This document shows positions 12,757-22,242 of a stretch of 64,000 nucleotides of DNA, piece after piece (the stretch's first letter is position 1; each line of letters starts with the position of its first letter). The notes below the pieces were generated by a model. It was not told the origin of the DNA. It ran no database searches and saw only the letters and a program-made list of their open reading frames with translations. The DNA is from Guillardia theta CCMP2712 (lineage: Eukaryota; Protista; Cryptophyta), in contig NW_005434545.1 of NCBI RefSeq assembly GCF_000315625.1, positions 65,669 through 129,668 of the forward strand, read 5' to 3'. Both the position numbers and the translations under genes were made by a program.

Positions 12757-17279
<4,523 letters not shown>

Positions 17280-17478
17280 CAACACTGAAACTCCTCGTCC
17301 TCGTCCTCGTCCTCGTCCTCTCCCCCTCACCATCCTCCATCCCTTGCGTCTCCTCCTCCATTCTTTCCTCCCCCCCCCTGCATCCCTCCCTCCTCCTCTC
17401 TCGCGAGATATTGCAGAACATTTCTTTGAGATATTCTTCTCCTTGTATTCCATCCCACTTCCTCCTCCTCCTCCTCTC

Positions 17479-20400
17479 TCATTCCCGCATTCCTCCCTGA
17501 AAGAACTTCAACCGAGCTGCCCGAAGCTCATCGCGCGTCAAAACCTTCGCCTCCTCTCGCTTCTCTTCCCCTCCTCCCTTGTGCTTGTGACCTGGATCCT
17601 CCTCCTCTTCCTCTTGGTCGATGATGATTACTTCATCTCCTCCTCCTCCTCTTCCTCCTCCATTCTTCTTGCTACCACCACCCATTTCTTGATCACTCCT
17701 CTTCCCTCCCCCAACGTCTTCAGCAGGATCATCGTCAATGATAATGACTGCTTCGCTTTCCCCTTTCCCCCCAGCTCCAGCTCCAGCTCCAGCTCCAGCT
17801 CCAGCTCCAGCTGATCTTTCTCTTTCCCCTTTCCACTCTCGCTCGTCTCTCCTCCCCCCCGTCCCCCACTCTCCCCACATCCCCTCCTCCTCCCTCCTCT
17901 GTCGCTCCTCCCTCCTCCTCTCCTCTTGCATCGACTGAGCCACCGCCGCCGCCACCTCGTGCTCCTCTAGCTCCTTAAGCGCCTTCATCTCCTCCTCTCG
18001 AGCAGACTCGATCATCGCTGCCATTACAGCATCCTCCATCAGCTCCTCCTCCCTCACAGTGAACGAGTCCTCCCTGCCCCCAACCTTCATGTTTGGCCGC
18101 TGCCGAGACAGCAGCGCTACGGTGTCGTCCTCTACCGGGACCTCAGCGAAGAGAGAGTCTACCAAGCTCTTCTTGCCGCCCACCAGCCAGTCAGTCATCC
18201 TCTTCTTCTCCTTCTTCGCCTCCTCCTCGGCCTCCTCCTCCTTGTTCGTGACCGTGCAGGAGATCTTGCGGATCTGAGACTGGAGGCCGTTGGGCACGAG
18301 GACAAGGAGGACGCGCTGGTGCCCCCGCGAGTCCTCGAGGGTGCCGGAGACGGGGCAAGAACATTCGAACACCTTCCACTTGGCAACCCACTTGAAGCCG
18401 AACGAGGAGGAAGAGGAGGAGGAGGCGGAGGATCCTTTCTGCTCGCTGAGTTTCTTGTTCAGCTCCTCTGCCTGCTCTTTGCGGTTCTCGAGTATTCCTC
18501 CTCCTCCCCTCGCAATCATCACCTTCGCCTCCACCTTCACCTCAAAGTTCGCGCGACGGCGACCGCGGTTGATGGCCGAGCAGACGGCGACGCCTTGAGA
18601 GAGAGTGACAAGGAGGAGACAGTCGCCTCCGAGGTCGTAGAGGCGATGAGAGAAGGGATGATAGATGTCTCGGATGTCGACCCTCCTCCTCTTGGGCAGC
18701 ACGAGGCCCTTGTGGAAGACGCGCAGGGCGAGGGGAGCATGAGACTCGTGGAAGGCAGCGGGCGCGATGCTGACCTGCTGCTCGTAGAAGAACCGCAGCG
18801 TGAAAGGCTGCGCCTTGCTGACCTCAGCAGCGAGAGGAGGAGATCCCAGGTTGAAGGGGAGCACGAGGTAGTCAGCATCGCCGTCCTCCAGCTCCACACT
18901 GAGCACGCAACGATGGCTCCCCTGAGCTCCAAAGAGGCCACCACAGAGCACAGACTCGACCCCTCCCTCCCTGTTGAGCTTGGCAACGAAGAGGCTGACG
19001 TCTCCTGGCTTGTAGCTCTTCTTCCGATCTGCTCGACACCACGACCCTCTCCTGTTCGGCTGCAGGACCATGACGATCATCCTTGTTGGCGTCACCGTTC
19101 GTACCCTGTAGATGTCTCGGCACACTCTGAGCGGCGAGGACTTGGCGCAGAAAGAGTTCTGGAAGGACCGAGCCTGCCAGTCCCTGTACGCGAAACAGAC
19201 GTCCACCAGCGAGAAGCCCATCACAAAGTGGGTGAAGTCCATCCTGACAGGACGAGGGAGTCAGACACGTCACTCATCTGTCTTGCCTCCTCCTCCTCCT
19301 CCTCCTCCTTCTCCTTCTCCTTCTCCTGCTCCTCCTTTCCTTACCAGAAAGTCCCGTCGTTGACTCCCGTTCGCTCTAGCCCTTCACAGATCATCCCGCT
19401 CCATTTCTCCGACGCGTCGCTCCAGTCGCCATTCCACTCCCCAACCCCATGAGGGTTTCGTATCCTCACCAGCCGCACCATCCCGTCCCTCCCCCTCCTG
19501 TCAGGCACCTCCCGGCACTCGAGGATCGAGTACGCATGGTTCCCACACAGACCCACTTCCTTCAGCTCCGCGTCCCCTCCCGTCGCGCATCCCATCGGGA
19601 ACCCCTGAGACTTGAAGTAGAGCAGCTGGTCCCACAGGTGCTCCATGCTGAAGTCCGGGCTGTCGAAGTTGATGGTCAGCGTCGGAGCCCCAGTCAAGTC
19701 CAGCAAAGCCTCAGCTATCTCTCCTCCTGAGATCGCCCGGTAGCTGCCATGGGCCTTGGCATACGCCTTCTCCAGCAGGCTCACCCACAGCTGGCAGTTC
19801 TGTCCCCTAGAGAAGGCGAGGTTGGTCTCCAGCGCGTGCTCGGGCCTCCGCGGGCTCCTCGTGCAGGGGAGCTGATCGTCGACAAGGATGGTCTGCCAGG
19901 ATCCGTCGAGGAAGAGGCGAATCATGTAGCAGCCGTTCGCGTTGGGAGCGGTGTCGTAGAAGAGCTTCGCAATGAGATCGTGTCGCTCTGCTACGACTGC
20001 CAGAGCAGACAGAAACCAGCAGTCTCCTATCCCCCCCTGCTGCAGGTCCTGCGCTGAGAACCCGAAATCGGTGACGAGGACGAAGGAAGGGAACCGTTTC
20101 CAGGTGTAATCTCTGATGGACGACCGCCTGTTGTCAGCCCAGGCAAAGAAGCCGCACTGCCTCTCCTCGCAGTGGTAGTACGGACGCCCTTTGTTGGGCG
20201 TATCCTTCTGCACGATGGACGACTTGGCTACCTTGTTACATCTACAGTGAGGAACGGCACCCGGACGAGTCTGATTGGTCGTCGGCTCTTGTGGACCCTC
20301 GATCGACTTCCTCTCAGGAGGAAACTCTGCGTCGTTCCATGGCACCGAATCCTGCAAGATCGCCCGCAGTTTCACAAGCTGCCCCTTGTCCCAGCTCTCC

Positions 20401-20579
20401 GACTCCCCGCTCGCTTCCCGCCAGTCGCCTGCCTCAGCCGCACCATGGAGCGACTTGCCCTTCTTGGTGGGATCATCTTCATCGCAATCCTCTTCTCCTC
20501 TCTTCGTCTTCTTCCGCATGAAATCGTCGATGCTCCTCCCCGCCGCCCCTCCTCGCTTCTTCCCATCCCCATGTGCCAT
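17479..20579 (-). CDS. SOL/CAPN15-like calpain cysteine protease with GRF zinc finger, UIM-like, SIM-like and p97-binding-like motifs; 2 exons (intron 19244-19344)
   Basis: Catalytic motifs QGGIGDCWFL, NHAYS and RNPHG, plus WVSLLEKAYAK and GTFW|MDF joined across a GT-AG intron. The zf-GRF is CRC..TPNKGRPYYHC...CGFFAWAD. Confidence 0.9.
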
Positions 20580-20939
20580 CGGTCTGAAACCACAATCTGG
20601 GAACTTGCATGGGTGGGTGGTCAATTCATATCTATGGACGGGTATAAATGCGGTTCTTTGCACCGGTTCAATTTTAAAGTTCTACTTAAGAGGGGTAGGG
20701 GACGAGTCTCTTTATTGGTGGGCGATCCCTTCACAAAAAGAAATGAACAAGTAGTGCAACCAAGGAGAAGGAGGAGGAGGAGGAGTCACTGACAGAGAAG
20801 AGAGCGGAACAAGGTGAGTGACGGAGGAAACAGGCGATCAGGTCCGATTGACAGCAGATGCAGAAGATCGAGAACGCATTAGAGATCAAGAACACAGTGG
20901 AAGCGTTTTCATGAGGGGTATTTGACTGCTCCCCGCGCC

Positions 20940-22242
20940 ATGTCGTCTCAAGCTCCGCAGCCATCCTTCGTCTTGCGAGGTATGACCTTCATGATCGTCC
21001 CCCAGTTTCACTCCCTGTGCAGGCCATGAGGCCCTGGTCCATTGTGTACAGATCTCTCCCTTCGATCCTGCTTTCCTCATAGCCTCCGACGATGCCGGCA
21101 AGGTGGTTGGGTGGAGCCTGCAGACGAGGAGATCCTTGTTTTCCATGCAAGCATCCGACTCTCCCGTGCTAGCAGTTCGCTGCCTGTCGAGATCGACGGT
21201 CTTGACCCAGGCCAAGGACGGCATCATCAACCTATGGGACGTCGAGTACTCGGGCACCCCCAGTCATCGTCTGGCGGAGGGGTCGATCAAAGGGGAGCAG
21301 CACACCTTCTGCAAGTGCGACATCATTCGGGATGACGGCAAGGCAGCGCAGCTCGTGGCGTTTGCGCAGGGAAGCGACGGGATTGGCGTCTGGGACCTCC
21401 GAAGCAGCGACCCGGTCTCAGTCCTGAAGCCTCCTGGCAGCAAACGCTCCTCGGGGTTCTGTACGGCGATGGTTGCTGTGGGGGACAAGCATGTGGTTGG
21501 AGGGTACGAGGATGGCGGGGTGAGGCTCTTTGACCTGAGGAAGAACCTCGCAGTACTGCAGGAGCACGTGCACAGTGATCCTGTCTTCGGCCTGGACGCA
21601 GTGCGCACGAGGTCTGACAGGTCAGGCGCGGAAGCCTTTGCCGTCATGTCCGGGAGCGCAAATGGAGAGCTGGTGCTGTCGCGGCTGACAGCGAGTGACG
21701 GTGGAGAGAGGGACATGGTTTTGACCGAGAAGGGACGGATGCAACTCAAGGTTGTCGTGAGGGCGAGGGAGAGTTGCGGAAGTTGAGGAGGAGCAGGAGC
21801 AGGAGGAGGAGGAGGGGGAGGAGGAGAAGATGTTGTGAATGTTGGTGGGGTGAAGGTTTTGATTCTTTCTTGACTGCCATGCAGTGCGCTGAAGAAGCTC
21901 GTGGTGTCAATCATTTATGCGCTCGACCCGACGGCAAGATCTTCGGTGCCGCATGCTGGGACGGGAGGATCAGGATTTATGGTAGGAGGCGAACTAGTGG
22001 CGGGAGATGGCACGTTGCGCTGATGAAGTCCTTACAGCTGTCAAGAACCCGAGGATACTGGCAAGCCTGAAATGGCACAGCAAGAACGTCCAATGCATAG
22101 GTAGCACTATACTTCACGTATCGTCTGCTGACCAACCCACGCAGCATTCTCTCCCGATTCTCAACTGATGGCAACCGGATCCGACGACACCAGGATCGCT
22201 GTATGGGAGATATTCACAGAACGAGGGAAAGAGGAAGTTTAG
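20940..22242 (+). CDS. GNB1L: WD40 protein of the GNB1L/ASA1/DSE1 family
   Basis: The spliced N-terminus MSSQAPQPSFVLRG|HEALVHCV resembles GNB1L (P.P.FVLRG). Other segments are GGYEDGGVRLFDL, RPDGKIFGAACWDGRIRIY, LASLKWH and the end MATGSDDTRIAVWEIF. Confidence 0.8.

Follow-up and report, generated by a model that had tools for sequence, protein, structure and literature searches.

A 64,000-nt stretch of the Guillardia theta genome (the window, to which all coordinates refer) encodes on its minus strand a two-exon calpain of 999 amino acids, in which a GRF zinc finger is inserted into the cysteine protease core and a C-terminal tail carries candidate docking motifs for PCNA, ubiquitin, SUMO and p97. 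We propose, with a probability of about 0.55, that this protein would be a chromatin-clearing nuclear cysteine protease coupled to PCNA, ubiquitin and p97, acting like SPRTN and Wss1 on crosslinked or trapped proteins. Across lineages of the wider GRF-calpain group, the short motifs look like interchangeable parts directed at the same partners, which is the strongest sign that selection maintains them. An initial annotation of the window had suggested a calpain for DNA–protein crosslink (DPC) repair or chromatin clearance. What stands of that idea is the conservation of its modules in orthologues, joined by a textbook PCNA-interacting protein (PIP) box at another site in the sister clade; assembly from scratch and an N-terminal PIP-degron do not stand, and the first of two helices resembling ubiquitin-interacting motifs (UIMs) is weak.

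The protease core and its GRF finger

Searches, alignments and structure models were made for each exon separately. Exon 1 (19345–20579), which encodes the basic N-terminus, the GRF finger and the calpain protease core, matches Peptidase_C2 in Pfam at an E-value of 3.8e-62 (PF00648, 210 bits against a cut-off of 23.8), and its model (mean pLDDT 88) has a fold TM of ~0.66 to calpain cores. The Cys-His-Asn triad is intact, as first described: Cys187 (20019–20021), His348 (19536–19538) and Asn375 (19455–19457) are present and align with calpain-9. On the calcium-site numbering of calpains, some of the acidic residues are kept and two are replaced, by Gln and Thr; since the site is only partly retained, calcium may tune activity rather than trigger it. 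Among the Pfam matches to the protein there is no metalloprotease domain with HEXXH, of either the WLM or the SprT kind.

The finger, of the four-Cys type, occupies residues 110–150 (20133–20252; Pfam E-value 1.6e-12). Its proposed insertion at the start of the protease core holds, because the first conserved calpain-core motif, DxxFP...SIxG (20295–20339), lies ahead of it. The finger resembles those of NEIL3 and APE2 in sequence (E-value 2e-13 to 7jl5) and in fold, the model lying within ~2 Å rmsd of both, and it retains the Val, Lys, Gly-Arg and Trp of NEIL3-type fingers. The zinc-binding Cys, Val, Gly-Arg and Trp are near-invariant in 47 relatives, and the Val and Trp correspond to residues with which NEIL3 contacts DNA (PMC9561275). 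The window protein differs from NEIL3 and APE2 in having a single four-Cys finger, placed on a protease, and in one residue that contacts DNA in NEIL3, considered below.

Conservation of short motifs among GRF-calpains

Hundreds of GRF-calpains were recovered with exon 1 as the query. A word-based search with exon 2 gave a single relative, and the full-length relatives came from a HMMER search. Named members belong to green algae, Mesostigma, a red alga, a brown alga, dinoflagellates and a chytrid fungus. In a core tree from which the His-Asn loop had been left out, GRF-calpains group together as a single clade (support 96/98), apart from the NZF-type SOL calpains to which animal CAPN15 belongs. 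Within it, clade A holds the window protein (support 93/93), and the remainder, clade B, does not resolve at its base. The SOL set likewise did not resolve against three long outgroup rows, and in a fast tree two SOL rows fell among the GRF rows.

Every motif quoted in the initial annotation is present, no more than a few codons from where it had been placed, and orthologues keep the UIM, the SUMO-interacting motif (SIM), the p97 motif and the tail PIP-like site far more often than shuffled sequence does. Of its two UIM-like helices, the second (17923–17967) fits the family UIM profile, with a score that lies within the family range and was reached by 0/300 shuffles, but the first (17995–18051) is degenerate and no better than shuffles, 24% of which reach its score. 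Neither window UIM matches Pfam on its own. Across clade A, a UIM is found in 24 of 26 full-length proteins (1.2 in shuffles), and Pfam recognises one in 8/32 orthologues. Both predicted SIM-like motifs (17728–17751 and 17596–17634) are present, outside the listed RNA contigs; their pattern arises in 0.12% of tail shuffles and occurs in 15/26 clade A proteins, against 1.5 in shuffles.

The terminal helix (17500–17535), noted earlier as resembling a VCP-binding motif (VBM) or VCP-interacting motif (VIM) for p97, matches 8/10 positions of the VBM consensus EhRRRRLxhh (PMC5389986), with two Arg replaced by Ala, and the pattern arose in 0/5000 tail shuffles. At the same terminal position, 12 of 28 clade A proteins have one or the other type of motif, a canonical VIM in 7 and a VBM-like sequence in 5, never both.

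PIP-like sites give a more divided picture. The strict box (Q-x-x-hydrophobic-x-x-aromatic-aromatic) is matched at neither site of the window protein, the Gln being missing from both. The tail site (18172–18207, containing MTDWL) nevertheless occupies a position conserved in orthologues, where Q-x-x-L-x-x-aromatic pairs occur: hydrophobic-x-x-aromatic spacing is found there in 17/24 clade A proteins (1.8 in shuffles), and with the Gln in 9/24 (0.1 in shuffles). A strict PIP box after the core is present in 9/26 clade A proteins (1.4 in shuffles), and at the tail site of the closest full homologue locus a canonical box is followed by several UIM-like helices. Near the C-terminus of vertebrate CAPN15 (P0300, P0312, P0362) stands a Q-x-x-L-x-x-W sequence homologous to this clade A site.

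At the N-terminus, the basic segment (residues 7–27; 20499–20561) has two basic clusters 12 residues apart, resembling the consensus of a bipartite nuclear localization signal (NLS), and the PIP-like motif once read here as a PIP-degron (20517–20540) falls between the two clusters. With the Gln absent from the window copy and a strict PIP box in 0/26 orthologue N-termini, the degron is not borne out; judged by its sequence, the segment is more likely a bipartite NLS. A degron common to the whole family was also considered and rejected, since only 3/72 of the loop motifs described next have both the TD and the basic residue at +4.

In clade B, a strict PIP box lies instead in the catalytic His-Asn loop, in 26/51 proteins against 0.1 in shuffles, and 57/72 loop motifs share the same offset from the catalytic His. 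The two placements separate by clade: we found no strict PIP box after the core, nor a clade A-type tail, in clade B, and no strict PIP box in the His-Asn loop of clade A, the window copy included. The loop PIP seems to be undescribed. Its occurrence inside the protease domain (e.g. P0043, P0150, P0217) extends over red algae, green algae, stramenopiles and the chytrid.

Further modules are more scattered, PBZ and PUB each being seen in single lineages. Pfam finds UBA_4 in 15/55 clade B proteins, with occasional PUB, CUE, UBM, RanBP-type and Smr domains, and a PBZ poly-ADP-ribose (PAR) finger in 3/32 clade A proteins. In P0011, P0016 and P0021 the PBZ sits within the protease core, past the catalytic Asn; the E. 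huxleyi protein listed by Zhao et al. 2012 (PMC3563603) likewise has it within the core. The chytrid protein, from Irineochytrium annulatum (P0150), has N-terminal UBM-like repeats of a ubiquitin-binding type; it would extend the family to opisthokonts, past its 2012 range, with transfer or contamination as the alternative. P0217 and P0226 combine UBA, GRF-calpain and a C-terminal Smr nuclease-like domain, through either fusion or gene-calling read-through.

A SOL/CAPN15-type scaffold

Exon 2 (17479–19243) encodes the end of the core, two beta-sandwiches, a motif tail and the stop codon; it has no Pfam match, and its model shows the two sandwiches followed by helices and then a disordered tail. 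The first sandwich (18760–19179) is a calpain CBSW domain, or domain III, with Z 9.4 to a mu-like calpain and to the C2-like domain of calpain-7. The second (18241–18651), which neither Pfam on exon 2 nor Foldseek against the PDB could name, is homologous to the C-terminal (SOH, CalpD_C) region of SOL/CAPN15. As a pair, the sandwiches match the calpain-D/SOL C-terminal region (atlas TM 0.72 by target over 262 residues), and HHalign relates exon 2 to the SOL C-terminal region at 99.2% (E-value 1e-19); because of this match the scaffold is SOL/CAPN15-type. A conserved basic loop in the CBSW domain (19009–19035) was considered as a counterpart of the SPRTN basic region and not counted, since a basic loop also occurs at this place in classical calpains.

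The window protein thus shares with CAPN15, SOL and calpain-D the CysPc, CBSW and SOH scaffold and ubiquitin-binding appendages, and several of its GRF-calpain relatives are named 'calpain-15' in databases. It differs in having no N-terminal RanBP2/NZF finger array, NZF fingers being found in a few of its relatives, and in bearing the GRF insert and the C-terminal UIM/SIM/VBM tail. CAPN15 is itself a ubiquitin-directed protease that cuts E-cadherin (PMC12805371). The comparison with CAPN15 drawn in the initial annotation was therefore relevant but understated, as CAPN15 is a homologue and more than an analogy. The suggestion of convergent assembly from scratch is replaced by a build on this ubiquitin-directed scaffold.

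Appendages also vary among SOL-type calpains that lack the GRF finger: PUB occurs in P0213, and the WWE domain PF02825 together with a UIM in P0275. Appendages linked to p97 and PAR therefore recur across the SOL group. A SIM-like VIDLT is found in many SOL proteins.

Candidate function and competing explanations

From the domains, the triad, the splicing and the motif conservation, we infer every further step of the favoured mechanism. The basic N-terminus would direct nuclear import, and the PIP site would recruit the protease to PCNA, with proteins stuck on DNA at replication or repair sites as its targets. UIMs and SIMs could bring it to ubiquitinated and SUMOylated chromatin proteins and, in some relatives, PBZ to PAR. 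The in-core GRF finger would bind single-stranded or junction DNA and so position or license the active site. The terminal VBM or VIM may engage the p97 N-domain, p97 unfolding or extracting the substrate, and after limited cleavage a short peptide would stay on the DNA, to be bypassed or trimmed.

Several results weigh against this proposal. In the GRF finger, one Arg with which NEIL3 contacts DNA is Ser, and the PIP site of the window protein is without its Gln. The tail site, moreover, has its homologue in an L-x-D-W element that SOL calpains conserve, and so may be structural. The motif patterns were chosen after the sequences had been viewed and related sequences are not independent, so that the shuffle counts overstate significance. 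Among 104 CAPN15/SOL controls, SIM-like motifs were found in 36 and NZF fingers in 92, with loop PIP and GRF in 0/104 each; by these counts ubiquitin binding belongs to the whole SOL group, and the DNA finger, loop PIP and PAR module mark the GRF clade. The substrate shown for CAPN15, E-cadherin, is a membrane protein. Zinc knuckles in 3/32 and Smr in 2/55 relatives are suggestive of RNA. Finally, one Wss1-like WLM gene of the genome (L001, G000:C20:697222-697817) bears HEXXH and VIM-like motifs, and there are two SprT-like matches (L004, L005). Replacement of Wss1 or SPRTN by the GRF-calpain is thus rejected, and the latter would be an addition to them; DPC proteases overlap in function.

Homology with CAPN15 spans the entire C-terminal region and allows a narrower role, in which a nuclear, PCNA-associated protease directed by ubiquitin and p97 clips specific modified replication or chromatin proteins, to serve their signalling or turnover, with the GRF finger serving only as a tether and no DNA-activated DPC cleavage. 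Cleavage of a ubiquitinated substrate by CAPN15 occurs at a single site (PMC12805371), limited cutting is typical of calpains, and PUB, UIM and SIM-like motifs are also found on SOL-type calpains. We regard such a regulatory enzyme as unlikely, if well within reach, as GRF, PIP and PBZ are restricted to the GRF clade, and the full combination of a DNA finger with motifs for PCNA, ubiquitin, SUMO and p97 is what characterises DPC proteases.

Two further explanations appear improbable. If the GRF finger bound RNA, the protein could be a quality-control protease for RNA–protein crosslinks or stalled ribosomes. GRF fingers do occur in RNA enzymes, CUE-Smr proteins act in no-go decay, and the zinc knuckles and Smr domains just mentioned, with UBA or CUE, would fit; these RNA-type domains are sporadic, however, and PIP boxes in both clades, PBZ, SIMs and basic NLS-like motifs indicate chromatin. 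Less probable still is an ordinary calcium-regulated cytosolic calpain with tail motifs that are low-complexity look-alikes or structural helices. The tail is indeed charged and of low complexity, UIM1 is weak, neither UIM is recognised by Pfam and the SIM region lies outside the listed RNA contigs, but Pfam UIMs in orthologues speak against it, as do the exchange of VIM and VBM at a single position and the presence of PIP boxes in two separate places.

Relation to known calpains and DPC proteases

The protein fits the Zf_GRF-CysPc subfamily, having GRF plus CysPc and falling in the single GRF-calpain clade. Zhao et al. 2012 listed a G. theta Zf_GRF-CysPc calpain of 999 residues, JGI 118521, which is almost certainly the window gene given the equal length and architecture, and reported such calpains from SAR, Hacrobia and Plantae (PMC3563603). 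Their entry has the same intact triad; no function and no SOH, UIM, SIM, PIP or p97 motif was noted for the subfamily (PMC3563603). Beyond that survey, the family now has chytrid and Mesostigma members and two groups with different PIP placement. A link to a Plasmodium calpain, raised by one review, was dropped because the 2012 table has that protein as CysPc-C2L.

SPRTN joins a protease to a zinc module that binds unpaired DNA, to p97 and PIP motifs and to a ubiquitin-binding finger, and Wss1 uses VIM and SIM (PMC9240642). The window protein shares this joining of a protease with PCNA, ubiquitin or SUMO, and p97 motifs, and has a putative counterpart of the zinc single-stranded DNA module of SPRTN (PMC9240642, PMC7782752), so that by sequence GRF-calpains would possess the DPC-protease set, with motifs for PCNA, ubiquitin/SUMO and p97 alongside a DNA-binding module. 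Relative to SPRTN, GRF replaces the ZBD and UIM replaces the UBZ. There is no homology: the enzyme is a papain-fold cysteine protease and not a HEXXH metalloprotease, and its DNA-dependent activity is putative. It would work like SPRTN and Wss1 by design while belonging to the Zf_GRF-CysPc calpains.

The architecture itself was thus catalogued in 2012; a DPC or chromatin role for it was not found in the searchable literature. A full-text search did not return calpain together with PIP box and GRF, and neither calpain nor cysteine is a word used in a DPC-protease review. In titles and abstract openings, no such role appeared for calpain with SPRTN, CAPN15 with DNA damage, or calpain with Ostreococcus S phase. 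Those searches yielded neither the repair hypothesis nor any mention of the loop PIP, of the homology of GRF-calpains to SOH or of how conserved their short motifs are.

Known DPC-repair proteases are metallo (Wss1, SPRTN, GCNA), serine (FAM111) and aspartic (Ddi1) enzymes. A broader proposal, to which we give somewhat less than even odds, is that GRF-calpains are old, eukaryote-wide DNA-dependent cysteine proteases that remove DPCs as a fourth catalytic class, with the PCNA site placed independently at two positions on a scaffold common with animal CAPN15. If true, a calpain in crosslink repair would add a catalytic class beside the other three, supply the function missing from an architecture on record since 2012 and open a view of genome maintenance in algae and protists, in which the subject has had little study. 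Human CAPN15, whose gene is linked to developmental disease, would be recast as a relative of a chromatin protease.

Gene structure, transcripts and neighbouring genes

The two exons contribute 412 and 587 codons and are separated by a 101-nt GT..AG intron (19244–19344), which splits the Trp codon of a GTFW|MD motif and is precisely removed in RNA contigs from two independent studies (X1, X3). In exon 1 the X1 contig spans 19390–20579. Listed RNA contigs together span 17911–20579 and 17403–17588, with none over 17589–17910. Of the segment 17479–18050, assumed earlier to be exonic, they thus cover 17911–18050, where one spliced contig runs through both UIM-like helices to 17911, and the part up to 17588, which includes the terminal motif in pieces that are themselves unspliced. 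The intervening 17589–17910 consists of purine-rich repeats and holds both SIM-like motifs; because its frame is open and it has no pyrimidine-rich acceptor, it is probably coding. A raw-read RNA run (X11) gave only repeat-derived matches, uninformative on strand or level.

Head-to-head with the calpain lies a spliced WD40 gene (20862–21786, plus strand) resembling GNB1L/ASA1/DSE1, with a 43-nt intron at 20978–21020. Its transcript contig starts ~280 bp from the calpain ATG, and a common promoter is possible; GNB1L/Asa1 supports the biogenesis of PIKK kinases. Downstream of the calpain is an OGT-like gene with TPR and glycosyltransferase-41 domains (12757–14535, plus strand), and between the two runs a long (GAT)n-type microsatellite (16060–16500).

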